The notes under the pieces were generated by a model that made no database searches, had not been told where the DNA came from, and was given only the letters and a program-made list of their open reading frames with translations. DNA of 64,000 nt from sequence record NC_061444.1; one strand, given 5' to 3'. How positions within the stretch are numbered: position 1 is the first letter of the stretch; each line of letters starts with the position of its first letter. The position numbers were made by a program, and so were the translations under genes. Below, piece after piece: positions 23,894 through 63,892 of this stretch.

Positions 23894-23909
23894 GTTATTG
23901 GAGAATAAC
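23894..23909 (+). promoter_or_regulatory. RBS hairpin, GGAG loop
   Basis: GTTATT-GGAG-AATAAC directly before ATG 23910. Confidence 0.55.
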
Positions 23910-24170
23910 ATGTGCGGACGTAGCCTATTACGGTTGAAGTACAACGCACGGTCCTCGAACTGGTGCAATAATAAAGTAAACGCTTGTAGCGAGCGGAAGG
24001 CGATAAACGTCCAGTGCGAACAATTCTTGGAAGCAACCAAAGATTGTCGTTCTGTGCAGAAGTCGTCAAGTGTAGTTTCTTTCTTCAAAGGTCAAGAGCT
24101 GGTTGGTCAAGCTATTTGGCATGAGATAGAGGGCGACAACACGCTTCAATTCCGGTTGCTACTTGCCTAA
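23910..24170 (+). CDS. Hypothetical protein (86 aa)
   Basis: Part of ORF 23775..24170; start chosen by RBS. Confidence 0.55.
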   Translation: MCGRSLLRLKYNARSSNWCNNKVNACSERKAINVQCEQFLEATKDCRSVQKSSSVVSFFKGQELVGQAIWHEIEGDNTLQFRLLLA

Positions 24171-24174
24171 CGAT

Positions 24175-24212
24175 AAAAGGGCTTTCAGAGATGATCTGAT
24201 GGCCCTTTTCTT
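24175..24212 (+). terminator. Intrinsic terminator
   Basis: AAAAGGGC...GCCCTTTT stem, T-rich tail. Confidence 0.65.
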
Positions 24213-24267
24213 ATTCTAACACTAATTTTCACCTGTCATTACACACAACCGAACTCGGAGTACTCAC

Positions 24268-25908
24268 ATGTCTTTGATTAAAATTCAAGGCGTTGCATCC
24301 ACATCTGCTCCTTCGAAAGCGCAGAAAGATGCCGCCGTATATATGTTTGGTTCTAAGGGCCATTCAATCGTCGCAGTGCTCGACAAATTCAGTCGCGCCA
24401 AAGAACTGCGTACTGCTCACCTTGACGGTTTACTCAAGCTGATGAAGGACGGTGAAGATGACGATATCATCAAGTTCACCGCGTCTGCACTCGGTAAGAG
24501 AACTATTACTGCTGCTCGGGCATTTGCTGTAGCTAAGACCCTGACTTCCAGCATCAAAGCGTTGAAACTGATTCGTGTTCCTGTTAAGTGGGTAGAAGGT
24601 CACTCAGATCTTGCCGCTGCTCGCGCACAGGAAACAAAAGAGATTCGCGCACGTCGTACTGCGGGCAACAAACCTGAGAAGCCTATTAAGCTCGACAACC
24701 CAGGCGCACCTGAGTCTACCACAGTAGACAACAAAGTGATTGACGCGAAGAAAGGTTCTGCGACACCTGCAACCGATGACCTAAGTGTGATTGACCGTGT
24801 AGTTAAAAACCCTTCTATCAAAAACACGTCTATCATTATTCGCCGCGTCTTTAAAGGCCATGAGACTACATCGTCACTGATGTTCCGCAAAGGCGTAGGT
24901 ACTCAATCGACGCTTCTGGGTCTTGGGTCTCACGGTAACGGACACGAGACTGGTGCCGGACTGCTGATGGCTGCATTCAAAGCTACCGGTATCAAACCTA
25001 AGTGGTACTTAGCTGATGCTGGCGATGCTGCTTTCGATTTGGGTTCTGCCGCGAACGTAACTAAAGTGTTCAAATGGCTGTCTGCAAGAAAGCCGGGCGA
25101 AACTTTTGCTGCTACTGCGAAGCTACCTAAGTCTGGTAAAGTGCCTGAAGGTGCAACGCGTGTTGTGCGTGATCACATCGGCAAGCCTGAGCGTGTTTCG
25201 AAAGAAAAACTCGCTTCTTCGACGTTTGATTTTGTCGGCGTTAAGTCTGCTGCCGGTGGCGCACTTAAACTGCAATTCAAACAACCGAAGAATGACCACG
25301 AATGGTCACTGACAATCCGTCGCAATAAAGACTCTATTACGAGTGACCACGATGGTTCTTCTGGCTACCAGACTGCTGAGTCGTTCTTGCAGCGCGGTGT
25401 CGTTGCAGTAGGCGGCAGTGTTGTTAATGAGCACCAGCAGCCGAACAGCGCGATCTTCCAGTTTGCGAATGAAGATCAGGCCAAAGCATTTATGTCTTGG
25501 GTTAAAAAGCAAAAAGCCCAGACAATCAACTTCAAAACTGAGCCTAAGATCACGGTCACCAAAGCTGCTTCATACACACCGTCAGGTAAAACTGATGTTT
25601 CGCTGGTGGATGAAATGGCAGAAGTACCTGCACGCAAGATCGCTGCGAAACCACTTCAGGCGCGTGAAGAATATTTCAACGCTCTGCGCAACATCCTGCA
25701 AAGCAATCTGCCTAAGTCAGACGTGTCAGCAACATCTGACGGTGTTGTCGTAGCGAAAGGTACCAAGATGTACACGATTCGCCTCGACGACAAAGCGTGG
25801 ACAATTCAGACAGGCGCTACTGGCAAACAGAAGAAGATTGGTGCGACGTTCGATATCGTTGACCTGCTCGGTATGATCGACAAGTCGATTCTGCGCCCCA
25901 AAGCGTAA
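24268..25908 (+). CDS. Lys/Ala-rich hypothetical protein (possible internal virion protein)
   Basis: 546-aa ORF, GGAG RBS, flanked by terminators. Confidence 0.75.
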   Translation: MSLIKIQGVASTSAPSKAQKDAAVYMFGSKGHSIVAVLDKFSRAKELRTAHLDGLLKLMKDGEDDDIIKFTASALGKRTITAARAFAVAKTLTSSIKALKLIRVPVKWVEGHSDLAAARAQETKEIRARRTAGNKPEKPIKLDNPGAPESTTVDNKVIDAKKGSATPATDDLSVIDRVVKNPSIKNTSIIIRRVFKGHETTSSLMFRKGVGTQSTLLGLGSHGNGHETGAGLLMAAFKATGIKPKWYLADAGDAAFDLGSAANVTKVFKWLSARKPGETFAATAKLPKSGKVPEGATRVVRDHIGKPERVSKEKLASSTFDFVGVKSAAGGALKLQFKQPKNDHEWSLTIRRNKDSITSDHDGSSGYQTAESFLQRGVVAVGGSVVNEHQQPNSAIFQFANEDQAKAFMSWVKKQKAQTINFKTEPKITVTKAASYTPSGKTDVSLVDEMAEVPARKIAAKPLQAREEYFNALRNILQSNLPKSDVSATSDGVVVAKGTKMYTIRLDDKAWTIQTGATGKQKKIGATFDIVDLLGMIDKSILRPKA

Positions 25909-25914
25909 ACACAT

Positions 25915-25939
25915 AGGGTAGCTTCGGCTGCCCTTTTTT
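25915..25939 (+). terminator. Intrinsic terminator
   Basis: AGGGTAGC-TTCG-GCTGCCCT-TTTTT. Confidence 0.8.
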
Positions 25940-26010
25940 ACGTCTGATCGACCTGAAAAGTGACTGTGACTTAGCTCAAATTGAATCGACCTACGATCTG
26001 CGAAGTCTGC

Positions 26011-26062
26011 AAATAACTGGACAAAATAGCTATATACACGCGTATGCGCCCTATGATACAAT
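26011..26062 (+). promoter_or_regulatory. Early promoter family, copy 1
   Basis: AAATAACTGGACAAAAT box; TGGACA to TACAAT 33 bp; extended -10 TG. Confidence 0.7.
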
Positions 26063-26098
26063 ATATGCAGACGCTACACGACGTAGCACATACAACTA

Positions 26099-26112
26099 AT
26101 GCTGAGGAGCAT
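26099..26112 (+). promoter_or_regulatory. GAGG-loop RBS hairpin
   Basis: ATGCT-GAGG-AGCAT, ATG at 26116. Confidence 0.65.
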
Positions 26113-26115
26113 ACA

Positions 26116-26460
26116 ATGAACGAAGTCAAACAAGCTGGTCGCGTATTCACTGAATCTGATCGTCAGATGCTGCAAGACCTCGCCGACACACTTAACGCGA
26201 AAATGAAACGTACCGACGCTCGCGTGATCGTTACTGACGGCGCCGAAGATAATCTGATACTTATGGTAGTCGGTTATGAAGACGGTGAAGTCGGTGACGA
26301 GTTTGGTTTCTTCTTAGACCTGCCGTATACAGATGACGCAGGCGAAGACGAGAATTACGTTCTGCACTATGCCGGTTACCCTGATATGAACGACTACACG
26401 TTCCGCACTGTTGACCTAGGCCAGCTTTCTGCTGCAATCGAAGAACTCGACCTGCTGTAA
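26116..26460 (+). CDS. Small acidic protein
   Basis: ORF; start set by RBS. Confidence 0.75.
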   Translation: MNEVKQAGRVFTESDRQMLQDLADTLNAKMKRTDARVIVTDGAEDNLILMVVGYEDGEVGDEFGFFLDLPYTDDAGEDENYVLHYAGYPDMNDYTFRTVDLGQLSAAIEELDLL

Positions 26461-26525
26461 TCGCTAACTGACAATGACTGCGGGGTTACGGCCCCGCCTA
26501 CTTACTTCTATAGAGAGACACGACT

Positions 26526-27146
26526 ATGACTATGCACATCACTACTTTCTTCGTAAAACGCTCTTACGCTTCTCTGGCTGCTGGTTCATTCACTATTGCT
26601 TCTAAGCAAGTGCAAGAGCTGGTGGAGTCTGAGGTATTCATTGTGTATGCTAACACAGGCTTAGGTAACGCCTTCGCTTTACGCAACATCACTCTGACGC
26701 CTGTTGATGAAGCAAACGTGCGTGTTGAGTTCGACCCGCTGACCGACGTTCACGCAATGCCACCGTCAGTGTTGCCGAAAGACGTATTGACCGAAAGCGC
26801 GCAGCAATACTATATGATGCCTGATGATGTTGCTCAGGCCCCTCGCTTCTGCGTATCTAATCACGCATCTGGCAACGAACCAAACATGTTGTGTCTGAAT
26901 CATGAAGTACGTGAGCGTCTGATTCAATATAAAGGCGGCATGATCAGCCTGACAGAGCTTGTGCTTATTCTGCATGAGCAAAACATTTCAGTGACCGACA
27001 TTCACCAGCACCGCCGCAACAAAGAGAAGTATGTGGCGCAAATCACTGAACGCACCTCACACGTTATCGAACTGTCGAAAGACAATGGCGTTAAGCAAGA
27101 CGGTAGCGACTTCCCGCTGCTTGCTCGCCTGAACGTGTATCTCTAA
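26526..27146 (+). CDS. Hypothetical protein, paralog of 27559..28137
   Basis: Colinear similarity along the length, both end in VYL. Confidence 0.8.
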   Translation: MTMHITTFFVKRSYASLAAGSFTIASKQVQELVESEVFIVYANTGLGNAFALRNITLTPVDEANVRVEFDPLTDVHAMPPSVLPKDVLTESAQQYYMMPDDVAQAPRFCVSNHASGNEPNMLCLNHEVRERLIQYKGGMISLTELVLILHEQNISVTDIHQHRRNKEKYVAQITERTSHVIELSKDNGVKQDGSDFPLLARLNVYL

Positions 27147-27150
27147 TCGG

Positions 27151-27202
27151 CAAGTCTTTGGACGAATACGCCATTGAGTTTCGAAACTCAATGGCGTACT
27201 AT
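27151..27202 (+). promoter_or_regulatory. Early promoter family, copy 2
   Basis: TGGACG box 32 bp upstream of TACTAT; TTGAGT -35 lies inside the palindrome. Confidence 0.55.
27167..27198. repeat. Perfect 32-bp palindrome
   Basis: TACGCCATTGAGTTTCGAAACTCAATGGCGTA equals its own reverse complement. Confidence 0.9.
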
Positions 27203-27249
27203 GTAATCCCTAGCGCAATGACGCGCTCAACAACGAAAGAGGCAATATC

Positions 27250-27495
27250 ATGTCAGAGAAACAAATCACACTCGACCTTATCGCAGACGTAGCATCACCA
27301 ACTGAGGTCGTGTTTGAAGACGGCGAGACTTCTACTCAATGGCTCGCACCGTACGATCTGCGCCTGACTGTTTCGCAGACTGTAGGCCCGAACGGCGACC
27401 CTGAAGTAAACATTATCGGTCACGAAGATGACCTGCGCCGCTTCTTAGCAGAAAAACTGCCTGACCTTGACAGTAAACTCGAAGACGTTCGTTAA
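27250..27495 (+). CDS. Small acidic protein
   Basis: 81-aa ORF, GAGG RBS. Confidence 0.7.
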   Translation: MSEKQITLDLIADVASPTEVVFEDGETSTQWLAPYDLRLTVSQTVGPNGDPEVNIIGHEDDLRRFLAEKLPDLDSKLEDVR

Positions 27496-27558
27496 TCGCT
27501 TAACCTGACTGTGGAGTTACGGCGCCACATAATATCAAATCAAATGAGAGACACGACT

Positions 27559-28137: not shown

Positions 28138-28140
28138 ACA
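28131..28140 (+). promoter_or_regulatory. TCTGTAAACA motif variant
   Basis: 43 nt upstream of ATG 28184. Confidence 0.4.
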
Positions 28141-28183
28141 ATCATAGCCCACACATCGTGGGCTTTTCTATTTGGAGAATGTT

Positions 28184-28444
28184 ATGATTCACTATACCCG
28201 TGAAGAACTCGAAGAAATGGACGTGACCGAACTCGACGCAATCGCTAACAGCCGCAACCTGCTCGATGACTTCGATGAAGAAGACGATCAAGACGAGCAC
28301 ATGCTGGTGGGTCTGATTCTCGACGACCAGAACGAGCAACGTATGGCAGAAGAAGACGCTGCTGACAAACAACGCGCCGAAGATGATCGTGACCCACGTA
28401 TCAATCGTCGTGAAGACCAAGACGGGTCTGACGACTACTGCTAA
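28184..28444 (+). CDS. Small acidic protein with HEH/Rho-N-like motif
   Basis: YTREELEEMDVTELDAIANSRNL. Confidence 0.7.
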   Translation: MIHYTREELEEMDVTELDAIANSRNLLDDFDEEDDQDEHMLVGLILDDQNEQRMAEEDAADKQRAEDDRDPRINRREDQDGSDDYC

Positions 28445-28457
28445 TAACTCTAAACTC

Positions 28458-30381: not shown

Positions 30382-30427
30382 CTGGCTAAAATAGCCGTTT
30401 CATTCAGAGACTGACCTATGTTATAAT
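30376..30427 (+). promoter_or_regulatory. Early promoter family, copy 3
   Basis: AAATAACTGGCTAAAAT; 33 bp to TATAAT; extended -10 TG. Confidence 0.75.
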
Positions 30428-30456
30428 AAACGTGAGCGCAGTGCTCATTACAACAC

Positions 30457-30470
30457 AAGCTGAGGAGCTT
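30457..30470 (+). promoter_or_regulatory. GAGG-loop RBS hairpin
   Basis: AAGCT-GAGG-AGCTT, ATG 30474. Confidence 0.65.
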
Positions 30471-30473: not shown

Positions 30474-30905
30474 ATGACTATTTCAATCGCTGATCTGAAA
30501 ACGCCTGCTGATTTTACTGCTGCCCTGACAGTTTCCCATATACAGGATTTGCGTGACCGTCTGATTGCTGCATTAGGCCGTGAAGATATTGAAGTGTTCG
30601 TGGATGCGGATGACGGCGGCGACGTGCCGAGTGACCCGACTGAAAATGTTAGCAGCCGCCTGATTCATCTGCGTATCGGGTACAAGGGCCGCGACCCTGA
30701 CGAACCGACCGACAAGGGTGTGTGGGATATTCTTGTTGCACTCCCGCATGAAGATAACTGCTGGGACACATGGACAAACTCATACGTCTTGCAGATAACG
30801 GATATCGATCAGGATGTTCTCGAAGAAGTTAGTGTGGAAAATGGCAACCCACGCATGTACGAAACATTCGCAGAACGTATTCAGTTCTGGTTGCCTAAAC
30901 TGTAA
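30474..30905 (+). CDS. Acidic hypothetical protein
   Basis: 143 aa; start set by RBS. Confidence 0.75.
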   Translation: MTISIADLKTPADFTAALTVSHIQDLRDRLIAALGREDIEVFVDADDGGDVPSDPTENVSSRLIHLRIGYKGRDPDEPTDKGVWDILVALPHEDNCWDTWTNSYVLQITDIDQDVLEEVSVENGNPRMYETFAERIQFWLPKL

Positions 30906-30955
30906 GTGATTTGTGTAGAGCATTCGCTGAGTGCTCTATGAAAATCCAAACAACC

Positions 30956-30971
30956 TAAGCTGAGGAGCTTA
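30956..30971 (+). promoter_or_regulatory. GAGG-loop RBS hairpin
   Basis: TAAGCT-GAGG-AGCTTA, ATG 30974. Confidence 0.65.
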
Positions 30972-30973
30972 AC

Positions 30974-31291
30974 ATGTCATCATCTACTACTCTGACTTTC
31001 ATCTTCCCAGAACTGACCTCTCTGGAAGTTTCTATCGGCAACGGCGTTGTCCCACACTATCTGGGAATTGCCGAGAACATGGACAAGACGTTTAGCGATG
31101 TTAAGGCGCTGCGTCTGATGCAAGACTCGAACGTAGTTGGCGTTATGAGCCGCTTCGATCAGTCTCTGCTTAATATGCTGATTGCTCGACACGAAACGCA
31201 TGAGCATATCCGCTGTCGTGATGCCGTTGAGCACGGCACCGAGTATTTCGCATCTACCTGTCTCTACCTGAAGGTAGCGCATCACCGCTAA
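30974..31291 (+). CDS. Hypothetical protein
   Basis: 105-aa ORF. Confidence 0.75.
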   Translation: MSSSTTLTFIFPELTSLEVSIGNGVVPHYLGIAENMDKTFSDVKALRLMQDSNVVGVMSRFDQSLLNMLIARHETHEHIRCRDAVEHGTEYFASTCLYLKVAHHR

Positions 31292-31336
31292 GATTTGTGA
31301 AGGGCCTTCGACGAGGGTCCTTTGAAAATCAAACCA

Positions 31337-31352
31337 TGTTCTGAGGAGAACA
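31337..31352 (+). promoter_or_regulatory. GAGG-loop RBS hairpin
   Basis: TGTTCT-GAGG-AGAACA, ATG 31356. Confidence 0.65.
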
Positions 31353-31709: not shown

Positions 31710-31755
31710 TTGTTGCTCGCAGGTTCTTACGAGAGCCTGCTGTCAACATAACCCA

Positions 31756-31771
31756 TAAGCTGAGGAGCTTA
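31756..31771 (+). promoter_or_regulatory. GAGG-loop RBS hairpin
   Basis: TAAGCT-GAGG-AGCTTA, ATG 31774. Confidence 0.65.
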
Positions 31772-31773
31772 AC

Positions 31774-32178
31774 ATGAAACAATATCCACAACGTGGCCAA
31801 GTGTACACGCTGAAAGAAATCGAGAATGAACTCGAACTGCGTGACAGCCCGTTCTTAGGCTTCACCCCGCAGAAAGTTCGTTACGTTGCACTCTCCGCGA
31901 CCGAACAAGTGATTCAGCAGTCGCATATTGCTAACCTCTCAGATCTTGAGGGTTGGGCCGATACTGAGTGGACGTATCTGTATGAGACAGACGAGTGGAT
32001 TCCAATCTTCCGTGCTGTCGATAACGCAGCAATCGAAGCGCTGTGTGTCATTGAACCTGACACGTATGAACATCGTTCTGATACAACAATGTTCGTCTAC
32101 CCTAAAGGCACTGAGTGCAAACAGTACGTGCCTTTCGATGAAGCAGTTCACGGCGATCTGCTTGAACGCGACGAATAA
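31774..32178 (+). CDS. Hypothetical protein
   Basis: 134-aa ORF. Confidence 0.75.
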   Translation: MKQYPQRGQVYTLKEIENELELRDSPFLGFTPQKVRYVALSATEQVIQQSHIANLSDLEGWADTEWTYLYETDEWIPIFRAVDNAAIEALCVIEPDTYEHRSDTTMFVYPKGTECKQYVPFDEAVHGDLLERDE

Positions 32179-35622: not shown

Positions 35623-35671
35623 AGAGATGAACGCTAGACACTCGTTTAGCTACTTACATGAGGATATGTAT

Positions 35672-54998: not shown

Positions 54999-55050
54999 AA
55001 AAATCTGGACAAAATGAGGCTATCAATCTGATGCCTCCCTGTGATATACT
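54999..55050 (+). promoter_or_regulatory. Early promoter family, copy 8
   Basis: AAAAATCTGGACAAAAT; 33 bp to TATACT; GAGGC-T-ATCA/TGAT-GCCTC hairpin. Confidence 0.75.
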
Positions 55051-55084
55051 AGAAGCGTAGCTTGTGCTGCGCTTTTTTAACTTA

Positions 55085-55098
55085 TGTCTGAGGAGACA
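55085..55098 (+). promoter_or_regulatory. GAGG-loop RBS hairpin
   Basis: TGTCT-GAGG-AGACA, ATG 55104. Confidence 0.65.
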
Positions 55099-55565: not shown

Positions 55566-56238
55566 CATGAAACCTGACTACACTCTACTGAAACGAAGCA
55601 AAGTCAATCCTGATTATTTTGCTTTTGTGTACGACGGTGACTTGCTTGCTGAGTTCACGCCGAGCAAGTTATATGGTGCATTTGAAAAAGCGCACAAATC
55701 ACCTGAAGTGAAAGAAGTCGATGTGCTGTGGCGTGATGGTACTCGCACCGTTGAGCACCTGGTGGTGCATCGCGTTCGCAAGTTCGTGTCTCTGGACACA
55801 ATCATGAACTACTATTCAGTGTGCCTGATGTTACGCGCTCAAGGCTCTGCTGTTAGTCTGTCTGTGCCTGTGGACGTTCGCACTATGTTCGATGCAGAAG
55901 GCCCAATGATTAGTGAGATTCGCATTGACTGTGATATCGTTGCTGATCTAGTGCGCGAGCTTAAAGCAGTCGTGGTCGAGTGTGATGACTCTAACATGGA
56001 AGACGACGAGTGGGACGACGAAGACGAGGATGAAGACTTCGACGACGAGTTTCACGATATGGAAACCATCGACCCTGCTACTGACCGTATGATGATTAGC
56101 AGTTGGGGATATCGCGCAGAAGACTGGGCAGTGACGCTGACAGACGAAGAAGTTAGCGAGGTACATAGCCTTGAAGTGGGCGTCGATTCTGACATTGAAC
56201 TGCCACTCGCACCTGATGCGAAGGACAAATACTTCTAA
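55558..56238 (+). CDS. Acidic hypothetical protein
   Basis: 226-aa ORF. Confidence 0.75.
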   Translation: MNNMKPDYTLLKRSKVNPDYFAFVYDGDLLAEFTPSKLYGAFEKAHKSPEVKEVDVLWRDGTRTVEHLVVHRVRKFVSLDTIMNYYSVCLMLRAQGSAVSLSVPVDVRTMFDAEGPMISEIRIDCDIVADLVRELKAVVVECDDSNMEDDEWDDEDEDEDFDDEFHDMETIDPATDRMMISSWGYRAEDWAVTLTDEEVSEVHSLEVGVDSDIELPLAPDAKDKYF

Positions 56239-56551: not shown

Positions 56552-56565
56552 AACAGGAGGCTGTT
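56552..56565 (+). promoter_or_regulatory. GAGG-loop RBS hairpin
   Basis: AACAG-GAGG-CTGTT directly before ATG 56566. Confidence 0.6.
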
Positions 56566-57027
56566 ATGAAGTTTAACGAAGTAAGTAAAGATGCTCAGGT
56601 CATTCTCATGGGTGGCGCACTCGCGGGTGTAGTTGAAGTCTTTGGCCGTGATGACGAAGACGAGGGCAAGCATTTGATTGAAACTGCGTTGCGTCAAGTC
56701 GGTCTGACGTTCGACGAGTTCCGTACTCTGATGACCGAAATGTCGCCAGAAGTTGAAGCTGAGGTCGCGTCTATCCAGACAATTGCTGCTGACCCTGACG
56801 ATGACTTCGAAGAAGACCCAGAAGACTTCGGTACATGTCCTGAATGTGATCAGCGTGTAGAAGATTGCGACTGTGAACATGACGACGAAAACCTCGACTC
56901 TATGGAAGAACGTCCCGGCAATCTGAACGATGACGATCAGACTGACGAAAATGGGTGGCAGAATCTCGATGAAGATGGCGTCTGTCGTAACTGTCACCAG
57001 CAAGTGTGCGAGTGCAGAGGTTACTGA
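56566..57027 (+). CDS. Acidic protein with two Cys-rich modules
   Basis: CPECDQRVEDCDC and CRNCHQQVCEC. Confidence 0.75.
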   Translation: MKFNEVSKDAQVILMGGALAGVVEVFGRDDEDEGKHLIETALRQVGLTFDEFRTLMTEMSPEVEAEVASIQTIAADPDDDFEEDPEDFGTCPECDQRVEDCDCEHDDENLDSMEERPGNLNDDDQTDENGWQNLDEDGVCRNCHQQVCECRGY

Positions 57028-57239
57028 TGGGAAGATCGACGCAAGACGAAATCAACGGTCAGATAGCTGCCTCCGAAGAGCAACGTTATAATGAGCAAAT
57101 CGCTCAATACGACGACTGGACAGACGACGAGCTGGCTGACGCTGTAGAAGCTAATGAGCTTGTGCGTGATGACGAAGACGCAAGCGACTACAGCCGCGAA
57201 GCGCTGATTCGAATGCTTATAGCAGATCGACGCTTCTAA
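57027..57239 (+). CDS. Small acidic HEH-like protein
   Basis: YDDWTDDELADAVEANEL...SREALIRML. Confidence 0.65.
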   Translation: MGRSTQDEINGQIAASEEQRYNEQIAQYDDWTDDELADAVEANELVRDDEDASDYSREALIRMLIADRRF

Positions 57240-57241
57240 GC

Positions 57242-57293
57242 AAAAATCTGGACAAAATGAGGGTTGTATCAGAATAGCACCCTAAGCTATACT
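57242..57293 (+). promoter_or_regulatory. Early promoter family, copy 9
   Basis: AAAAATCTGGACAAAAT; 33 bp to TATACT; AGGGT/ACCCT inverted repeat. Confidence 0.7.
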
Positions 57294-57299
57294 ATATAG

Positions 57300-57498
57300 A
57301 CAGTGAGACACGTTCTCTCTGCTATATGCCTTTGTTAATGCTTGACCGTGTGTTTTTCGTTTTCCCGGACACACGGTCCTTTTTAAAGTCGCTTCCTGTG
57401 AGGCTGCTTTAAAAAGGGTTCGATACCCTTTGAGCGCACCGGGCTTTACGCGGTTTCCGCCTTGTGTGCTCTCATGCTAAACCGCAAAGGAAATAGAT
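57300..57498 (+). ncRNA. Long structured 5' leader / candidate cis-regulatory RNA
   Basis: Two 10-bp stems, a T-loop-like hairpin, an 8-bp stem and an alternative pairing next to the RBS. Confidence 0.45.
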
Positions 57499-58227
57499 AT
57501 GCCAAACTTACGTGCTAAACCAGAAGACAAATTCTCTAAAGCTCGTTCTGCGAAGAACTCACCTGAACGTCAGGCTGCTGCTGAGAAGAAACGCACAACC
57601 CCACGCGGTCCGTCTTCTGCTAAACCTCGTCAGTTGCCGCCGGGCTATGGCTATAAGTCAAAAGCTACAGGCGAACGTGCGCCAGAGCGTGACGAAAGAG
57701 AATCCCAGAAACCTAATCTGAGTAAGAAAGAATGGGTTGCTCGTCGTGACGCAACGCCGAAGCTGCGTGATGAAGAACGTGTGTATTTTCTTGTACACGC
57801 AATCTTATCAGCGTGGAAGTTGAGTGCATCTACCGATGCTGATGCAAATGCTACAGGCATCATCAAAGTGTCTCGTCGTAAAGTTGAAGGCGCCTTGCGT
57901 GATCTCAAGAATACGCGCTTCACTAAGATACCGACGCTCATTAACGACGTCCTCGTGTATAACGAAGTCTGCAATGAGTTTGGGCAGTGGGTGTATGTCG
58001 AGCATGACAGTCCGGATTGGATTTTCGTGCGCCTTCCGAAAAACAGCACGCCTGTGATTCGCGCAGATATCGCAGTTGACAGAACAGGCGAAACGCCTAC
58101 CACTGTAACAACCTCAAGTGAGGTGCTGTTGGATAACGGCGGTGACGACGAAGACGAGATTCCTGAAAACGTCGAATATGACGACGAAGACGAATCTCAT
58201 GTACAGGAAGAAGAGGACGAAGAATAA
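57499..58227 (+). CDS. Protein with basic N-terminus and acidic C-terminus
   Basis: 242 aa; AAGGA RBS. Confidence 0.75.
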   Translation: MPNLRAKPEDKFSKARSAKNSPERQAAAEKKRTTPRGPSSAKPRQLPPGYGYKSKATGERAPERDERESQKPNLSKKEWVARRDATPKLRDEERVYFLVHAILSAWKLSASTDADANATGIIKVSRRKVEGALRDLKNTRFTKIPTLINDVLVYNEVCNEFGQWVYVEHDSPDWIFVRLPKNSTPVIRADIAVDRTGETPTTVTTSSEVLLDNGGDDEDEIPENVEYDDEDESHVQEEEDEE

Positions 58228-58730: not shown

Positions 58731-58782
58731 AGAAATCTGGACAAAATCGTGGTTGCTATCTGAAAGCGACCTATGCTATAAT
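58731..58782 (+). promoter_or_regulatory. Early promoter family, copy 10
   Basis: AGAAATCTGGACAAAAT; 33 bp to TATAAT; TTGCTA -35; GGTTGCT/AGCGACC inverted repeat. Confidence 0.75.
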
Positions 58783-58820
58783 AGATACAGACGCAATAGT
58801 GCGTCACAAACAAAACACAT

Positions 58821-58834
58821 ATACTGAGGAGTAT
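58821..58834 (+). promoter_or_regulatory. GAGG-loop RBS hairpin
   Basis: ATACT-GAGG-AGTAT, ATG 58840. Confidence 0.65.
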
Positions 58835-58839: not shown

Positions 58840-60441
58840 ATGGCACGTATCGAAACTAACTCTAACCTGGTTGGCAAAACTATCATCCTGCTGAACGGCA
58901 CCAAATCTAAAATCGAAGATGCTATCGCGTCCGGCTACAAGGTGAAAGGTCAGAGCAAACGTATCGCAACCCGCTGTGTTATCAAAGAGGGATCTCACTT
59001 CCGTGAAATCGAGCGCATGAACATGAGCCAGCTTGAAGATACCGGCGAAGGTTACGTCAAGCTGAAAGAAGCGAAAGCGTCCGTCAAGAAAACTACCGGC
59101 AAGAAAGACGCAGTGAAAGAGAAAGCGCCTAAGACTTCTGGTAAGAAGACTGGCGGCAAAGTCTCGAAAGAGAAAGAACCGAAAGTTCGTCGTAAATCTT
59201 CCGAAGAGCAGTCCGAAGATTATCAGAATCTGGCACACGCTATCATCAAAGGCGGCAAAGCTAAACCCGCAGTTGAAATCGAAACTGTAGATGAAGCGCT
59301 GACCGATACTGTGGCAAAACGTCTGGTGGCGCTGCTTGAAAACAGCGAAATTGCGAAAGTGTGTGCAGACAACAAAACGCCGATCGCTAACGCTGTGTCT
59401 GTTGCTTACGGTGCTGAGTACGCCGAAGAGAACAACACAATGCAGATCACGTTGAGCCTGCAATACGCGAAGCCTGTGAAAGACACTGCTGTTGCTCCTG
59501 AGCTGGATGAAGCTGTTGCGAAACGTGCCGCCAAGCTCGCGTCTAAGAAGATTGGCAAAGTGCTGGCGAAAGCAATCAAAGCTGCGTTCGACCTCGAAGA
59601 TGCGAACGACCTGCTGCCGGGCACTGTACTGACTTCTGACGGTGCTGAGTTCGTGTTCGTGGGTGAGTCTGCGAAACACGCTGGCAAAGCGCTGATGTAT
59701 AGCGCAGACACTGATAGCTTCAAATCATTCGGCGCCGACAAGCTGTCCGACTTCGAAATCGTCGCTGATGAAAGCGAAGAAGAAGAGGAAGAAGTCGAAG
59801 AAGAGGAAGAAGAAGTCGAGGAGGAAGAGGAAGAAGAAGAAGCCGAAGAAGAAGAAGACGGCGAAGAAGAAGACGGCGAAGAAGAAGAAGGCGATACGCA
59901 AGAATACGAGTTCGTTGCTGTCGAAGCGGAACAACTCGAACTGGTCAACAAGAAAGTGACCGCTAAGTATCACGCTGCACTCGCCGAACGTTTCGGTGTA
60001 GACGAAGAAGCGCTTGCCCCTGGCCTGATGCTGACTGACGGCGATACGACTTTTGCTTACCTGGGCTGCGATAGCAAAGGCGGGCTGCTGGTAATCGACG
60101 TTGACGCAGAAGACGAAGACGACAACGTTCTGGTCTACAGCAAAGCTGATATCAAAACGCTGACCGACTTTAGCCCTGTGATCGATAGCGGCGAAAGCGA
60201 AGAAGACGCCGAAGAAGAAGACGGCGAAGAAGAAGAAGATAACAACGTTGACTTCGAAGACGAAGAGGGTGAAGAAGAAGAAGACGAAGAAGAAGACTTC
60301 GAATTTGACGACGCACCAACCGAAGACCTCGAAGACCTGACCGAAGACGAACTGCGTGATCGCGCTGTTGAAGCTGGTCTGACTACGCCGCGCAAAGCAG
60401 ACAAAATGACTGCTGCCCAGCTGCGTAAACTCCTGAAGTAA
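58840..60441 (+). CDS. Large Glu-rich multi-domain protein (paralog of 60528..61763)
   Basis: SH3-like N-terminus, two internal repeats, poly-Glu linkers, C-terminal HEH-like motif. Confidence 0.8.
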   Translation: MARIETNSNLVGKTIILLNGTKSKIEDAIASGYKVKGQSKRIATRCVIKEGSHFREIERMNMSQLEDTGEGYVKLKEAKASVKKTTGKKDAVKEKAPKTSGKKTGGKVSKEKEPKVRRKSSEEQSEDYQNLAHAIIKGGKAKPAVEIETVDEALTDTVAKRLVALLENSEIAKVCADNKTPIANAVSVAYGAEYAEENNTMQITLSLQYAKPVKDTAVAPELDEAVAKRAAKLASKKIGKVLAKAIKAAFDLEDANDLLPGTVLTSDGAEFVFVGESAKHAGKALMYSADTDSFKSFGADKLSDFEIVADESEEEEEEVEEEEEEVEEEEEEEEAEEEEDGEEEDGEEEEGDTQEYEFVAVEAEQLELVNKKVTAKYHAALAERFGVDEEALAPGLMLTDGDTTFAYLGCDSKGGLLVIDVDAEDEDDNVLVYSKADIKTLTDFSPVIDSGESEEDAEEEDGEEEEDNNVDFEDEEGEEEEDEEEDFEFDDAPTEDLEDLTEDELRDRAVEAGLTTPRKADKMTAAQLRKLLK

Positions 60442-60469
60442 TCTGTCGTAACACTGTAACACTGAAACA

Positions 60470-60496
60470 AGATGCGGTTCATACGGAGCCGCATCT
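60470..60496 (+). terminator. Intergenic stem-loop (no U-tract)
   Basis: AGATGCGGTTC-ATACG-GAGCCGCATCT. Confidence 0.45.
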
Positions 60497-60509
60497 CTGA
60501 CAACTAAGC

Positions 60510-60523
60510 TGATTGAGGAATCA
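60510..60523 (+). promoter_or_regulatory. GAGG-loop RBS hairpin
   Basis: TGATT-GAGG-AATCA, ATG 60528. Confidence 0.65.
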
Positions 60524-60527
60524 CACT

Positions 60528-61763
60528 ATGTCAAACGCAAATGCAAACCTGTTGAATGCCCGTGTTCGTCGTCTGGACGGTACTATCACTTTCATCAACA
60601 AAGTGAACGCTAATGGTTATAGCACCGACGCGAAAGGTCCGCAAATTCCAGTTAGGCGTATCGTGCTTGCGGGCAAAACGCTGAAAGAGATTGAAGCGCC
60701 GTTAGCGAAAGCTGAACACGTTCTGATTGACGGTATCACTGTGAAACTGAACAAGCGCCAGCAGAAAGACTTGCTCAACGACGAGATCGACCTCGACACG
60801 ATCAAGCCAGACTTTAGCTCTCTGGTGTATATTGACCCTGAGACAGGCAAGCCTGCTGCTGTGAAAGCTGCGAAGCAGAAAGGCGGTGTGAAAGCGACAC
60901 GCGAACGCAACAAAGACACTCGCTCTAAGAAAGAGCGTAAAGCAGAAGTCGCCGCGTCTAAAGACGAAATCGACATGCTGCCGTCTGATAAAGTTGATCG
61001 CAAAGCTGAACTGGCGGGCATCATCGACGCAACCATCGCCGACGCGACTACGAAAGACCGTCGCAAGATGTTGAGCGAAGCGTTTGACATGGACTGGAAA
61101 GATGTGAAGAAGCATGGCGGTAAGGGTGTGATTAAGCACATGGGACGCAAAGCTGCACAATCTGCCATGAACAAACTGAACGCGACCGTGACGCAAGACA
61201 CGTTCATCAAGCAGATGCCTATCGCGCTGAAACGTCTGATTCAAGACGGTGCGTTGACGCTGAACAAAGCGCAGATTGAGCGCGTACTGAGTGCGCTTGA
61301 CCTCGACGTGAAATTCTACGACGTTGCGATGCAAACGCTGCTGGGTAATCTCAAGCTGTCACTCGACAAATCTATTGAGAACCCGAAAGTGAAAGAGAAG
61401 AAAGCGAAGCGCAAACTTGCTGTGCCGACCTACGCTTCTGAGAAAGAACAGACCAAGCGTGTGCGCAAAATGACTATCAAACTCATTAAGCCGCCTAAGA
61501 AAGAAATGGCCGCAGCGAAAGCGCACATAAAAGAATCGAAAGCAATCATCGCCAAGAAGCTGGGCATTGCACCTGCTGATGTGAAGCGTGGTCTGCTCTG
61601 CTATAAACCGAACGGTGTTGAACTGATGTTCGTCGCGTGTGACATGACCGGCCCTGTCTTCATCGAGAAAGACGGTAGCGAATGCGTAATGGCACATGCC
61701 AACGTGCAAGACACCTTCAACCTGACCTTGGGTACTAACTCTGAACTGGATGCTGCTGTATGA
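60528..61763 (+). CDS. Lys-rich multi-domain protein (paralog of 58840..60441)
   Basis: Shared N-terminal L(N/D)GT..I......GY domain and C-terminal repeat domain. Confidence 0.8.
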   Translation: MSNANANLLNARVRRLDGTITFINKVNANGYSTDAKGPQIPVRRIVLAGKTLKEIEAPLAKAEHVLIDGITVKLNKRQQKDLLNDEIDLDTIKPDFSSLVYIDPETGKPAAVKAAKQKGGVKATRERNKDTRSKKERKAEVAASKDEIDMLPSDKVDRKAELAGIIDATIADATTKDRRKMLSEAFDMDWKDVKKHGGKGVIKHMGRKAAQSAMNKLNATVTQDTFIKQMPIALKRLIQDGALTLNKAQIERVLSALDLDVKFYDVAMQTLLGNLKLSLDKSIENPKVKEKKAKRKLAVPTYASEKEQTKRVRKMTIKLIKPPKKEMAAAKAHIKESKAIIAKKLGIAPADVKRGLLCYKPNGVELMFVACDMTGPVFIEKDGSECVMAHANVQDTFNLTLGTNSELDAAV

Positions 61764-62143
61764 CAAATAACGAAATCCTTTTGTCAGGCATGTTTGCTCA
61801 ACTCTACGCGCGGCTGTTAACAGCCGCAGTATTGAAGACCCACGTGTTCTACTCTGACTTAGCGCCGATTGTGTTCGGCGTTCAACTGTCTGTGATTAGT
61901 AGTGCGCAGTACGATGCGCTGTGGGGATTAGTGCGCGAAACCATGCGTGTCGATATATCGCATGGCAGACCACCGCTTGCTGCACTGTATGTATCACGGG
62001 CCACCGATAGTAAACTGCCCGCTAAGAAATTCTTTCGTGAGTACCACAAGCTCACGGGCAAGCATTTGTCAGAAACTGAATGGCAAGCACTCGTCGAAAA
62101 TGTGTGGAACAGCTATGCACCAAATCTTCGGGAGCCATCATGA
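61760..62143 (+). CDS. Small protein, possible wHTH (GRPPL motif)
   Basis: VFYSDL...GRPPLAALYV...P...FF. Confidence 0.6.
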   Translation: MTNNEILLSGMFAQLYARLLTAAVLKTHVFYSDLAPIVFGVQLSVISSAQYDALWGLVRETMRVDISHGRPPLAALYVSRATDSKLPAKKFFREYHKLTGKHLSETEWQALVENVWNSYAPNLREPS

Positions 62144-62601
62144 AAAAGTCAAAAGTAGTAATTAGTCGCGGCGGCTACAGGCCGTCATCGCAAGAAGAAG
62201 CACAAAAGCTGATAGCTGAATTTATTCTTGGTACTATCGGCGTTGACCCTACTGTTATCAGTCAGCAAATGCTGTTGAACATTGCTAACTATAATTACCT
62301 GACGTCTATCGCAGACACTGGCAAAGCAAATGCAGCGAACCAAGCTGCGTTGCACAAAACTGTAAAAGAACTTAATGCGTTCTGTAGAATGCACAAGATA
62401 TCGCTGGGTTTACTAATTATGCCCCATACTTCTGCTAGTGATTATGCTGGCGACGAGGTTGTAGCGATTCCTTGGGAGCATGTGCAGAAAAACGCATTGA
62501 GCCAGTCGGCCATCGACTCCCTGTTCAAAACAGTTGAAGCAGATGGTTACCCGCAGTTTGTGACTGATGCGAAAACAGTAGAGGGATACAATGTTTTATG
62601 A
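62140..62601 (+). CDS. Hypothetical protein
   Basis: 153 aa; GGGAG RBS. Confidence 0.65.
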   Translation: MKKSKVVISRGGYRPSSQEEAQKLIAEFILGTIGVDPTVISQQMLLNIANYNYLTSIADTGKANAANQAALHKTVKELNAFCRMHKISLGLLIMPHTSASDYAGDEVVAIPWEHVQKNALSQSAIDSLFKTVEADGYPQFVTDAKTVEGYNVL

Positions 62602-63871
62602 TCATGTATTCAGCCACGACGAGAAGCAATTGCTCTTGTCAGTGGCTGAGTCTAAATATTTGGTGAGACTTGACTGCCCCGATTATTTGAAGAAGTCTAA
62701 ACACGCGATTGAGATTCGCCACACTGTGACGAACCGTGGTGAGCAACGTCGTACTGGTACGATAACAACTGCGTTCGTACCGCGTATTCATTCTGCGACT
62801 GTGCAGCGCCTTGTGCGTGATGTGCGTGACTCTGCAACAAAGAGTTCGTCTGACAGTCTCGCTGCGTTGTTTGAGCTTGGCCTTGGTGTGCCGAAGCAAC
62901 ACGATATCGCAGTGTACCTGAAAGACTACTCGCGTGAGAACGATAAGAAGGGTGTGGGTATCAAGTATATCCGCAAACTGATTAACGAATATCACCGCAA
63001 GCATCGTCATAGCTTCGCCGGTAGTCGCTGGCTGATGCCCGCTGCGTACACTGCGAACATGCTCAACATGCAATCTTTCATTCATCTGAAAGAAGACGGC
63101 TACTCGAAGAAACTGAAAGTTCCTGAAGGTGTGCCTGTCGTGTTCATCTACCAGAACACGAATCATGAAAAAGCAACGTTCACGATGTGCGACGCATTCA
63201 TGATAAGCCCGCTCGGTTATCCGATGCCGTTTGCGCAGGTAGCGTTACGACCTGAGTTCAAAGCTGCACCGAAAGAGTTCAAGTCGAAAGCGCTGCGTGG
63301 CAAAAGCATGTACGCTATGGTCATGGGCATTGTCTACTGGGAAGAAGGAAGTGCAATTGACAACTTCCGTGAGTTGCAAGCAATCGACGACGACCCGTAT
63401 CTGACGCTGCTTAGTGACGAGAAGTACGCAGACCGCCGCTCACCTGAGTATCAAGAGCTGCTGGACAAACGTGCTGAACTGAACGAGCGAGCGAAACACT
63501 GGAACGAGATCGTATCGAAGTATGGCAAGACAACGCGCACTCTCAAACCCGAACAAGCGGAGAAGTTAGAGAAAGCTGAGGCGTTCTTCAAAGAGCGCAA
63601 AGAGTTCATGGACGACTTCGACAAGTTCGAAAAGAAAGAAAACCACAAAGCTGCGAAGAAGTTCGCTGCTGCGAAAGCGCTGTTTGCTGCTGTCGATTGT
63701 GGCACTATCATGGACCGCACCACGTACATGTCAGTGTCGTCTGGGCTTGACGATGTGAATAAGATACTCACTACGTGGGGATTCACGACCGTCAATACTG
63801 TTAATGCTAGTTTGAAGAAGTCTATCCTTACATACGACCGTAAAAACGCAAGCCGCGTCTGGTCTCTGTAA
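62591..63871 (+). CDS. Hypothetical protein
   Basis: 426-aa ORF. Confidence 0.75.
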   Translation: MFYDHVFSHDEKQLLLSVAESKYLVRLDCPDYLKKSKHAIEIRHTVTNRGEQRRTGTITTAFVPRIHSATVQRLVRDVRDSATKSSSDSLAALFELGLGVPKQHDIAVYLKDYSRENDKKGVGIKYIRKLINEYHRKHRHSFAGSRWLMPAAYTANMLNMQSFIHLKEDGYSKKLKVPEGVPVVFIYQNTNHEKATFTMCDAFMISPLGYPMPFAQVALRPEFKAAPKEFKSKALRGKSMYAMVMGIVYWEEGSAIDNFRELQAIDDDPYLTLLSDEKYADRRSPEYQELLDKRAELNERAKHWNEIVSKYGKTTRTLKPEQAEKLEKAEAFFKERKEFMDDFDKFEKKENHKAAKKFAAAKALFAAVDCGTIMDRTTYMSVSSGLDDVNKILTTWGFTTVNTVNASLKKSILTYDRKNASRVWSL

Positions 63872-63876
63872 ACCAC

Positions 63877-63892
63877 TTATCTGAGGAGATAA
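63877..63892 (+). promoter_or_regulatory. GAGG-loop RBS hairpin
   Basis: TTATCT-GAGG-AGATAA, ATG 63899. Confidence 0.65.

Follow-up and report, generated by a model that had tools for sequence, protein, structure and literature searches.

Shine-Dalgarno-in-loop hairpins with covarying stems precede eleven genes of Erwinia phage pEa_SNUABM_32

Eleven start codons of Erwinia phage pEa_SNUABM_32 (Alexandravirus, 266 kb) are preceded by short hairpins that carry the core of the Shine-Dalgarno (SD) sequence in the loop, and these hairpins are a true family with covarying stems. The window, the whole stretch of 64,000 nucleotides analysed here, corresponds to positions 186001-250000 of record NC_061444.1. 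An earlier note on this DNA had listed eleven such hairpins, including GTTATT-GGAG-AATAAC at 23894, and all 11 are found at its coordinates with the arms it gave (Table 1).

The hairpin family

A perfect 5-6 bp hairpin ends 0-6 nt before the ATG at 11 of 11 starts, with a loop-to-ATG distance of 8 to 15 nt, and the ATGs are all annotated in NC_061444.1 (gp254, 256, 266, 267, 268, 269, 311, 314, 318, 319 and 323). The products are small acidic proteins. The tetraloop is GAGG at 10 sites and GGAG once (gp254); the swap of the loop-closing pair is real, ten sites closing with U-A and gp314 with G-C; at gp314 the SD AGGAGG stretches over the 5' arm and the loop.

GAGG is the most frequent tetraloop among all hairpins of at least 5 bp in the 266-kb genome (12 vs a mean of 2.3 per loop). 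The lengths of the stems that flank GAGG on the + strand are bimodal (0 bp: 485, 1: 109, 2: 40, 3: 10, 4: 2, 5: 7, 6: 4). Among 33 RBS GAGG sites, 10 hairpins are observed against 0.49 expected on permutation of the 3' flanks (maximum 4 in 2000) and 0.04 on shuffling of the flanks (maximum 2 in 5000), so that the comparison with shuffled RBS regions, which had been proposed as a check, places the family far above chance. A scan of the whole genome for any purine tetraloop followed by a start codon and ORF returns exactly the same 11 sites, every one in the 210-250 kb interval of the + strand, and the minus strand has none; the hairpin is thus carried by 11 of the 336 phage genes. The covariance model that had also been proposed was built and run over the genome, where it gave no convincing further match. 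A looser relative precedes gp276 and sits behind the same promoter type as the first genes that carry the hairpin.

Table 1. Hairpins and upstream elements, in window positions.
Feature	Positions	Strand	Remarks
gp254 SD hairpin, 6 bp, GGAG loop	23894..23909	+	ATG 23910
gp256 promoter module	26017..26062	+	CTGGACAAAAT motif, extended -10 TGATACAAT
gp256 transcript, 5'-proximal stem-loop	26073..26087	+	
gp256 SD hairpin, ATGCT/AGCAT, GAGG loop	26099..26112	+	ATG 26116
gp266 promoter module	30382..30427	+	CTGGCTAAAAT, TGTTATAAT
gp266 transcript, 5'-proximal stem-loop	30433..30447	+	
gp266 SD hairpin, AAGCT/AGCTT	30457..30470	+	ATG 30474
Before gp267 hairpin	30916..30955	+	intercistronic stem-loop, TGAAAATC motif, CA-rich linker
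gp267 SD hairpin, TAAGCT/AGCTTA	30956..30971	+	ATG 30974
Before gp268 hairpin	31300..31336	+	intercistronic stem-loop, TTTGAAAATC, CA-rich linker
gp268 SD hairpin, TGTTCT/AGAACA	31337..31352	+	ATG 31356
Before gp269 hairpin	31719..31755	+	intercistronic stem-loop, CA-rich linker
gp269 SD hairpin, TAAGCT/AGCTTA	31756..31771	+	ATG 31774
gp276 (radical SAM) RBS hairpin, TACAT-GAGGAT-ATGTA	35655..35670	+	6-nt loop; looser relative of the family
gp311 promoter module	55005..55050	+	CTGGACAAAAT, TGATATACT
gp311 transcript, 5'-proximal stem-loop	55054..55073	+	
gp311 SD hairpin, TGTCT/AGACA	55085..55098	+	ATG 55104
gp314 SD hairpin, AACAG/CTGTT	56552..56565	+	ATG 56566
gp318 promoter module	58737..58782	+	CTGGACAAAAT, TTGCTA-18-TATAAT with TG
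gp318 transcript, 5'-proximal stem-loop	58790..58805	+	stems covary in relatives; loop AATAGT conserved
gp318 SD hairpin, ATACT/AGTAT	58821..58834	+	ATG 58840
Before gp319 hairpin	60471..60509	+	intercistronic stem-loop, linker
gp319 SD hairpin, TGATT/AATCA	60510..60523	+	ATG 60528
gp323 SD hairpin, TTATCT/AGATAA	63877..63892	+	ATG 63899

Conservation of the helix in related phages

Orthologous starts were taken from eight relatives in at least four genera, irrespective of structure, and the helix is kept at them. The five inner pairs are formed in 85-93% of the distinct orthologue sequences, with AU/UA/GC/CG swaps, and at all three middle pairs each of AU, UA, GC and CG occurs. Paired cells make up 72.5% of the set (45.6% in shuffles) and the covariation score is 0.642 (shuffles 0.163 +/- 0.022, 0/500; slid partners at most 0.187). 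The claim that stem sequences differ while pairing is kept therefore extends to cross-genus orthologues, and the covariation that had been proposed as a check is present in the relatives. Compensatory changes among orthologues and among non-homologous genes show, at the level of sequence, that the helix is under selection.

Individual sites illustrate the pattern. The orthologues of gp266 have ACGCT/AGCGT, a compensatory change, and those of gp267 have TTAGCT/AGCTAA and ACGCT/AGCGT; SNUABM_17 has TAAGCT/AGCTTA in place of the gp268 arms. The gp269 orthologues have ATGCT/AGCAT and (A)TGTTCT/AGAACA(T), and the hairpin is lost in Alexandra and JA29. At gp311 the Y3 orthologue has AGTCT/AGACT. The gp318 hairpin is present in 8 of 8 relatives (5-7 bp, two compensatory variants) and is the sole consensus helix that RNAalifold predicts for these leaders. 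The hairpins of gp314 and gp319 are unchanged in 4 and 5 relatives, respectively, the latter being absent in JA29, and that of gp254 is conserved in 5 relatives, two of which have a 5-nt loop. At the place syntenic to gp256, hairpins with this arm and an AAGG loop occur in AD1 and, including a G.U pair, in SNUABM_17; tblastn with the gp256 N-terminus finds no orthologous start there in either phage. Judged from these comparisons, the SD-in-loop structure is evolutionarily maintained.

The few U.G/G.U pairs in the stems are limited to the sense strand and the neighbouring stem-loops show compensation involving G.U pairs, which argues for an RNA element and not a DNA element. N4 early promoters are hairpins with a 5-7 bp stem and a small purine loop, and the present palindromes resemble them superficially; they could then be N4 virion-RNA-polymerase-type promoters, or protein-binding sites, with an incidental SD-like loop. 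We consider this highly improbable. The arms differ from site to site, which does not fit a sequence-specific DNA binder; every copy is sense-strand and at the RBS position; wobble is tolerated only in the RNA sense; the variable loop-to-ATG distance is an SD-like spacing, not a fixed distance to a start site; and sigma-70-like promoters lie upstream.

Leaders, SD exposure and possible roles

The hairpin belongs to a larger module. This opens either with an intercistronic stem-loop or with a sigma-70-like promoter of the extended -10 type and its 5'-proximal stem-loop; a linker, the hairpin and the ATG come next. The linker is G-poor and CA-rich, 9-17 nt long in 10 of 11 cases and 5 nt at gp323. 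Leader composition (A+C 73% vs 55%, G 6% vs 18%, p about 0.001) is maintained in relatives despite sequence divergence. Four hairpin genes (gp256, gp266, gp311 and gp318) are indeed the first gene behind a common promoter module of this kind, as the earlier note had said; that the promoters are early is suggested by promoter type only. The hairpin is missing from three further genes that come first after a promoter of this type (gp290, gp297 and gp330), so that the device is not required for early expression as such.

The SD is GAGGAG (AGGAG) in 8 of 11 hairpin genes and in 0 of 84 other genes. The four SD core bases are unpaired in the predicted ensembles with P = 0.80, compared with 0.34 at ordinary RBSs of the window (p = 2.6e-5); predicted single-strandedness of the linker does not differ significantly from other genes (0.54 vs 0.47). 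For gp256 the helix has a predicted P of 0.96, whereas for gp254 and gp311 its predicted probability is low and it is predicted not to form in a context from -70 to +40. The stems are weak (dG37 -1.9 to -5.2 kcal/mol), and according to de Smit and van Duin the 30S subunit is reportedly able to open hairpins of such energies. Translation is raised strongly, via standby binding, when an RBS stem-loop has a single-stranded CA-repeat tail on its 5' side, an effect that peaks at 16-18 nt (PMC5934652).

We tentatively favour the reading that the hairpins, which some eleven phage mRNAs carry in their 5' leaders, are a cis-acting SD display device with a standby leader. The stem would keep the SD core from capture by other parts of the transcript, and the 30S subunit would wait in ribosome standby on the linker, CA-rich and presumably unstructured, nucleate on the Gs of the loop and next melt the short stem, whose two top pairs must open before AGGAG can pair in full. 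The outcome would be high, context-independent initiation on early transcripts and, as a by-product, an RBS that may be a worse substrate for single-strand-specific endonucleases. In favour of SD display, each of the 11 hairpins is sense-strand and spaced from an ATG as an SD would be, and none occurs elsewhere in the 266 kb. Against it, a 4-nt loop is a sterically poor partner for the anti-SD and the final two SD bases are in the stem, so that the hairpin might equally lower initiation; the strict geometry (tetraloop, GG in the loop) over unrelated genes also fits a specific factor.

Lowered initiation would mean that the stem covers the AG of a very strong SD together with the spacer and so partly masks it, making translation limited, or conditional on upstream translation that opens the stem or on temperature (about 28 C or below for growth of Erwinia). 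Stem and full AGGAG pairing exclude each other, the stems are about 1 kcal/mol more stable at 28 C than at 37 C, and in T4 the genes e, soc, 49 and I-TevI have SD-sequestering hairpins that lower translation (PMC3014915). The gp323 hairpin starts 5 nt past the gp322 stop codon, and opening by upstream translation would couple these two genes. However, 10 of 11 hairpins are 60-200 nt from the upstream stop and coupling is therefore not general; known inhibitory hairpins and RNA thermometers bury the SD in the stem, whereas here its core is in the loop and predicted to be unpaired. It would also be unparsimonious to add a brake where the promoter is strong, a 5' stabiliser hairpin is present and no SD in the genome is stronger, and we regard such tuning as improbable.

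5'-proximal stem-loops of the ompA type are a known mRNA stabiliser, and the G-poor, C/A-rich leaders open with a 5'-proximal stem-loop. Jointly with it, the hairpin stem could prolong mRNA life by making the purine-rich RBS double-stranded enough to evade single-strand-specific endonucleases (RNase E, or a RegB-type GGAG cutter of a competitor or the host). GGAG sites are protected from RegB by secondary structure (PMC3014915), but the GG of the motif remains in the loop and leaves a RegB-like cut site exposed; such a shield is quite unlikely to be the main role.

The earlier note had proposed a coordinated switch for early genes, read by a protein or nuclease. The hairpin, an N-AGG tetraloop on a 5-6 bp stem, would then be a translational operator bound or cut by a trans-acting factor (a phage-encoded repressor or nuclease, or host RsmA/CsrA), and the eleven genes would be switched off (or on) together during infection. 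We find this proposal unsupported and, as an explanation, possible but doubtful. It would account for the restriction of the hairpin to so few genes, clustered in the presumed early region, and for the same geometry in unrelated genes and several genera; small acidic products are typical of host take-over functions, needed only briefly. CsrA targets carry GGA/AGGA in a loop, and here this motif is partly in the loop. In T4, shut-off of early genes by RegA and RegB is an established precedent (PMC3014915).

Against an operator, the SD (the N-AGG loop with AG of the 3' arm) and the bases complementary to it account for everything that is conserved, and the first loop base can be G, A or U. RegB-type cleavage fits poorly, since RegB/S1 needs an 11-nt single-stranded site and structure protects from it (PMC1702504, PMC3014915). 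A CsrA/RsmA target is likewise not supported: the GGA register is one off from the CsrA SELEX tetraloop hairpin, and 7 of 11 hairpins have no second GGA within a distance of 63 nt, such GGAs being depleted overall (0.45 observed vs 1.05 expected). No RegB, CsrA, Cas6 or other RNA-binding domain occurs in the 50 window proteins scanned (of a proteome with ~285 further proteins), and gp254, the one candidate factor examined, has no conserved cysteine pattern.

Comparison with known systems

A close parallel to SD display with standby is the coat cistron of MS2 (Sterk, Romilly and Wagner 2018, PMC5934652), where an RBS stem-loop also directly follows an unstructured single-stranded stretch; the best standby sequences in that study are CA-rich, and the phage linker is A/C-rich and usually 9-17 nt. 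In MS2 both SD and AUG are hidden in a far more stable hairpin (PMC5934652), whereas the phage stem is weak, with the AUG outside and the SD core in the loop, and in this dsDNA jumbo phage the hairpins form a multi-gene family. CsrA/RsmA hairpins share the short stem, the purine loop with GG and the overlap with the SD, and the hosts Erwinia, Dickeya and Yersinia all possess RsmA/CsrA. In the phage, however, the closing pair and not the loop contains the A of GGA, the sites lack A(N)GGA with an unpaired A, and a second GGA nearby is usually absent.

The T4 RegB/S1 sites (GG*AGRAYARAA) are alike in that presumed early genes have GGAG in the SD and an A-rich spacer after it. They differ in being single-stranded and protected by structure (PMC1702504, PMC3014915), whereas in the phage pairing takes in the AG and 3-4 nt beyond it; the 50 window proteins, the scanned part of the proteome, include no RegB homologue. 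The TIR hairpins of T4 e, soc, 49 and I-TevI, and RNA thermometers, are also local translation-initiation helices conserved among related phages, but their stems enclose the SD, the AUG or both, and a promoter inside the 5' arm bypasses them; the phage hairpins display the SD core and no internal promoter is evident. The E. coli rpsA leader, a highly efficient initiation region, has hairpins with GGA in the loop and single-stranded A/U-rich spacers between them, and so resembles the phage arrangement of hairpins beside unstructured spacers. Unlike the phage, with its canonical and strong SD, rpsA has no canonical SD and is autoregulated by S1. The family differs from the known inhibitory hairpins, which bury the SD in the stem, in displaying the SD core in a loop at 11 genes of one jumbo phage, an arrangement kept across genera.

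Hairpins with the SD core in the loop

The window is 100% identical to positions 186001-250000 (+ strand) of pEa_SNUABM_32 (NC_061444.1), a 265,891-bp Alexandravirus whose host is Erwinia amylovora, and the motif was judged against all 336 annotated genes of the whole genome. The 11 SD hairpins claimed in the earlier note (at gp254, gp256, gp266, gp267, gp268, gp269, gp311, gp314, gp318, gp319 and gp323) were all found exactly as it gave them: perfect Watson-Crick stems of 5 or 6 bp, a tetraloop that is GAGG in ten and GGAG in one, and a 3' end 0-6 nt upstream of the annotated ATG in every case. GAGG is a rare word in the genome, yet it is the commonest of the 256 tetraloops among hairpins of at least 5 bp genome-wide (12 against a mean of 2.3). 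The number of + strand GAGG sites falls geometrically as the stem lengthens from 0 to 4 bp (485, 109, 40, 10 and 2 sites) and then rises again, with 7 sites at 5 bp and 4 at 6 bp. The 21 nt before annotated starts in the window contain 33 GAGG words, ten of which have a stem of at least 5 bp, whereas permuting the 3' flanks among these sites, which preserves the composition of the CT...AG columns, gives 0.49 expected (maximum 4 in 2000 trials) and shuffling each site's own flanks gives 0.04 (maximum 2 in 5000). Together with the genome scan described next, these make four independent checks by which the 11-hairpin family is not a product of chance.

A scan of both genome strands for any purine-rich tetraloop on a stem of at least 5 bp, followed within 12 nt by a start codon with an open frame, yields the 11 sites and no others; the minus strand, with its large structural and replication block, has none. 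A covariance model trained on the family and run over the whole genome brought no convincing members beyond the exact-pairing scan and missed gp314; Rfam 15 at gathering score gave no matches to curated RNA families over the window.

PHROGs, Pfam and PDB sequence searches of the hairpin gene products returned only 'unknown function' matches. The proteins are mutually unrelated apart from a weak N-terminal match between gp318 and gp319, so gene duplication does not explain the common RBS. Several are small with a very acidic composition and call to mind DNA mimics or proteins of host take-over; in gp256, gp266, gp314 and gp318, D+E make up 20-29% and no known domain is present. Elsewhere in the window, 33 nt at 56016-56048 are 100% identical to Ralstonia phage phiRSL1, within a gene annotated as single-strand DNA-binding protein.

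Compensatory changes in related phages

Syntenic regions of 42-49 kb were compared from eight relatives: SNUABM_17, Dickeya AD1 and Alexandra (Alexandravirus), Y3 (Sasquatchvirus), SNUABM_5 (Rivsvirus), Dickeya JA29 (Salmondvirus) and the unclassified SNUABM_13 and Yersinia phage fHe-Yen9-02. Orthologous starts were placed by tblastn of N-termini, blind to structure. Anchored on the SD core, the 68 upstream segments align without gaps. The five inner pairs are formed in 85-93% of the 54 distinct sequences, and AU, UA, GC and CG are all seen at each of the three middle pairs. The covariation score is 0.642, compared with 0.163 ± 0.022 for shuffled partners (0 of 500 reach the observed value), and is at most 0.187 when partners are slid by 1-3 columns.

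That the arms differ while pairing is kept, as first noticed within the window, is borne out by compensatory changes within orthologous groups across the eight relatives. The gp318 arms are ATACT/AGTAT or AATACT/AGTATT, with TAATACT/AGTATTA in SNUABM_5 (43% protein identity over the tblastn match), TAATTCT/AGAATTA in fHe-Yen9-02 and the hairpin ATTTCT-tagg-AGAAAT in JA29; RNAalifold of the gp318 leaders gives the SD helix as the sole consensus structure, with two compensatory pairs. Similar exchanges are seen at gp266 (AAGCT/AGCTT versus ACGCT/AGCGT), gp269 (AAGCT/AGCTT versus ATGCT/AGCAT) and gp311 (TGTCT/AGACA versus AGTCT/AGACT). Hairpin number drops with distance from pEa_SNUABM_32, from 9-11 per syntenic region in Alexandravirus, Y3 and SNUABM_13 to 6 in SNUABM_5, 4 in fHe-Yen9-02 and 1 in JA29, and the hairpin is maintained in jumbo phages of Erwinia, Dickeya and Yersinia that belong to at least four genera. 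Gain and loss also occur: gp269 lacks the hairpin in Alexandra, and SNUABM_13 has new ones with arms TTCTT/AAGAA and TTCTC/GAGAA.

The few wobble pairs in the SD stems are U.G or G.U in the sense strand, and together with the strict sense-strand placement at SD distance this points to hairpins that probably act as RNA rather than DNA. A DNA-level element is thus extremely improbable; an N4-type hairpin promoter in particular was rejected for the variable loop-to-ATG distance, the restriction to the sense strand and the sigma-70-like promoters upstream.

An identical RBS cassette, TAAGCTGAGGAGCTTAACATG, precedes gp267 and gp269 (window 30956-30976 and 31756-31776). In SNUABM_17, TAAGCTGAGGAGCTTAACATG also stands in place of the gp268 version (sequence L007:9027), and SNUABM_5 has one CGTCT...AGACG cassette twice (sequence L011:33828 and 34314). 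Identical cassettes before unrelated neighbouring genes suggest that whole RBS modules may be copied or converted between genes.

Promoters, stem-loops and linkers upstream of the hairpin

The SD hairpin is the final element of a longer module, whose parts are collected in the table. Four hairpin genes had been described as first behind an early promoter; gp256, gp266, gp311 and gp318 do share a promoter, with the temporal class 'early' of the hairpin genes inferred from promoter type only. This promoter combines a conserved CTGCAAATAA-CTGGACAAAAT motif with an extended -10, TGnTAnAAT (at gp318, TTGCTA-18-TATAAT with TG). The (CTGCAAATAA)CTGGACAAAAT element is located ~25-30 nt upstream of the extended -10, too far away for a -35, and could represent an UP-like element or a binding site for a factor. 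The promoter family has ~10 members, on the + strand only, between 212 and 262 kb. Genes gp290, gp297 and gp330 lie behind the same promoter type and have no SD hairpin; the radical-SAM gene gp276, with the same promoter type upstream, has a looser hairpin that is kept in relatives.

Positions of module elements and acidic hairpin gene products (window coordinates unless stated)
Feature	Position	Strand	Characteristics
Promoter family	26017, 30382, 35578, 43277, 46705, 55005, 57248, 58737	+	shared upstream motif and extended -10
Promoter family, outside window	record 257477, 261307	+	
5'-proximal stem-loops	26073-26087, 30433-30447, 55054-55073, 58790-58805	+	GC-rich
Intercistronic stem-loops	30916-30938, 31300-31322, 31719-31740, 60471-60495	+	conserved UUC...GAG inner stem
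gp276 SD hairpin	35655-35670	+	TACAT-GAGGAT-ATGTA, 6-nt loop
gp256, acidic product	26116-26460	+	
gp266, acidic product	30474-30905	+	
gp314, acidic product	56566-57027	+	
gp318, acidic product	58840-60441	+	

A stem-loop starts 4-11 nt past the -10 of the shared promoters, which would put it at or close to the transcript's 5' end. The stems covary across relatives and the loop is conserved (AATAGT at gp318); these elements look like 5' stabiliser hairpins. gp267, gp268, gp269 and gp319 are instead preceded by an intercistronic stem-loop of ~10 bp, without a proper U-tract and often with UUUGAAAAUC just downstream. These show G.U-containing compensatory changes across relatives, with processing, 3' stabilisation or leaky termination as candidate roles.

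From the upstream structure to the SD hairpin runs a linker of 9-17 nt at 10 of the 11 sites and 5 nt at gp323. The 12 nt 5' of the hairpin have an A+C content of 73%, compared with 55% at the 78 other scorable window starts, and 6% G compared with 18% (p about 0.001), a composition retained in relatives despite sequence drift.

Downstream of one further member of the promoter family, in window 57240-57499, ~200 nt of non-coding DNA contain strong hairpins and GGGTTCGATACCC, which resembles a tRNA T-arm; at the syntenic position SNUABM_13 carries an annotated tRNA-Glu. ARAGORN and Rfam gave no match in this region, nor did Rfam at E-value threshold give anything meaningful on 57200-57520. It could be a decayed tRNA or an uncharacterised small RNA.

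Possible functions and relation to known systems

Hairpin genes have the strongest SD of the window, GAGGAG (AGGAG) at 8 of 11 compared with none of the 84 other starts, which mostly have GGAG or GAGG. Stem dG ranges from -1.9 to -5.2 kcal/mol at 37 °C and from -2.9 to -6.4 at 28 °C. In -70..+40 context the predicted helix probability exceeds 0.75 at 7 of the 11 sites, with gp254 and gp311 poorly predicted. The four SD core bases have a mean unpaired probability of 0.80, compared with 0.34 at the SD cores of 78 other genes (Mann-Whitney p = 2.6e-5); the AUG, first codons and linker show no significant difference in predicted unpaired probability from other window genes. Given this predicted exposure of the core, the stem is, in the modelled ensembles, a clamp holding the SD core outside competing structures. 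Full AGGAG:anti-SD pairing requires the two top pairs to open.

That the hairpin tunes translation negatively or conditionally, through temperature or through coupling at gp323 (where it starts 5 nt past the gp322 stop), is quite unlikely: an inhibitory hairpin or RNA thermometer buries the SD and/or AUG in a helix, whereas here the core is in the loop, the AUG lies outside the helix and only the last two SD bases are paired. A role as nuclease shield is very unlikely.

The structure itself is solid and lends itself to testing; the readings of its biological role are tentative. The earlier note was right about an SD-in-loop family with covarying stems, but the coordinated switch through a protein or nuclease that it proposed has found no positive support. 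Such a translational operator or nuclease target, read by a trans factor, is rather doubtful, since the SD together with its complement accounts for all conserved bases and the first loop position varies. In the CsrA/RsmA SELEX hairpin, ACA-RGGA-UGU, the GGA is wholly in the loop, and the usual bridging by the CsrA dimer involves two or more GGA sites 10-63 nt apart. Here the loop reads N-A-G-G, shifted by one base relative to the SELEX register: the A of GGA opens the 3' arm and is paired in ~90% of sequences. At 7 of 11 sites no second GGA lies within 63 nt, and second GGAs are depleted overall (mean 0.45 against 1.05 expected from window density). The helix is weak, and induced fit by CsrA/RsmA is possible despite the register difference.

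With T4 RegB targets the hairpins share a GGAG in the translation initiation region at 9 of 11 (GAGGAG or the GGAG loop); the sequences at gp314 and gp319 are AGGAGG and GAGGAA. The RegB site is a single-stranded stretch of 11 nt with consensus GGAGRAYARAA, and structure protects against RegB/S1 (PMC1702504, PMC3014915), whereas in our hairpins a conserved helix takes up the AG and the next 3-4 nt as its 3' arm, and the sequence downstream of GGAG fits the consensus only loosely. Among 50 window proteins, Pfam found no RegB (PF10715), CsrA, Cas6 or other RNA-binding domain. Neither SNUABM_13 nor fHe-Yen9-02 conserves the gp254 cysteines, and the idea that gp254 binds its own GGAG loop as a zinc-finger protein was dropped for that reason. 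gp235 ('CRISPR/Cas associated') is a PD-(D/E)XK nuclease. gp271, gp276, gp277, gp288, gp292 and gp311 occur in all hairpin-rich relatives and are absent from the JA29 syntenic region, a phyletic co-occurrence too weak to name a candidate. A post-transcriptional regulon peculiar to this jumbo-phage lineage, in which a so far unrecognised phage protein or host RsmA reads the N-AGG tetraloop on its short stem and about eleven early genes are switched off or on together, is unlikely; it would be an analogue of T4 RegA/RegB in which structure rather than single-stranded sequence is recognised.

The YUNR U-turn motif speeds antisense RNA pairing. C-U-G-A at the loop start fits YUNR, and the loop might be a fast-capture SD by which phage mRNAs outcompete host mRNAs for the 30S subunit.

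Tentatively, and at somewhat less than an even chance, we favour a cis-acting device on early transcripts that combines SD display with standby, a reading built on the structure, its selection, the module and the core exposure in predicted ensembles. The 30S subunit would load on the CA-rich linker and nucleate on the hairpin loop, the short stem would then melt, and robust early translation would result. The closest experimental precedent is ribosome standby at the MS2 coat RBS, where CA-repeat single-stranded tails before the RBS stem-loop strongly boost initiation, with an optimum of 16-18 nt (PMC5934652). As there, the SD of the hairpin genes is inside a local stem-loop. The linkers match a standby tail (~10-18 nt, best CA-rich) in composition and, gp323 apart, roughly in length, but their predicted unpaired probability is not significantly above that of other genes.

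Packaged with promoter, 5' stem-loop and CA-rich leader, the hairpin is a natural compact test bed for two questions: how ribosomes use a loop-displayed SD, which bears on the standby model, and whether the early genes of jumbo phages are under a post-transcriptional programme. The module might also find use as a context-insulated expression part. Literature searches found no earlier account of phage hairpins with the SD in the loop, and neither a transcriptome nor a proteome for the Alexandra-like phage group. Precedents exist for structured RBSs, for standby sites and for GGA motifs displayed in loops, the structured RBSs being known as single-gene cases (MS2 coat, T4 e, thermometers, CsrA targets); what is new is a very small SD-tetraloop hairpin of sharply defined form that recurs at about eleven unrelated genes and is kept by compensatory evolution in several jumbo-phage genera.
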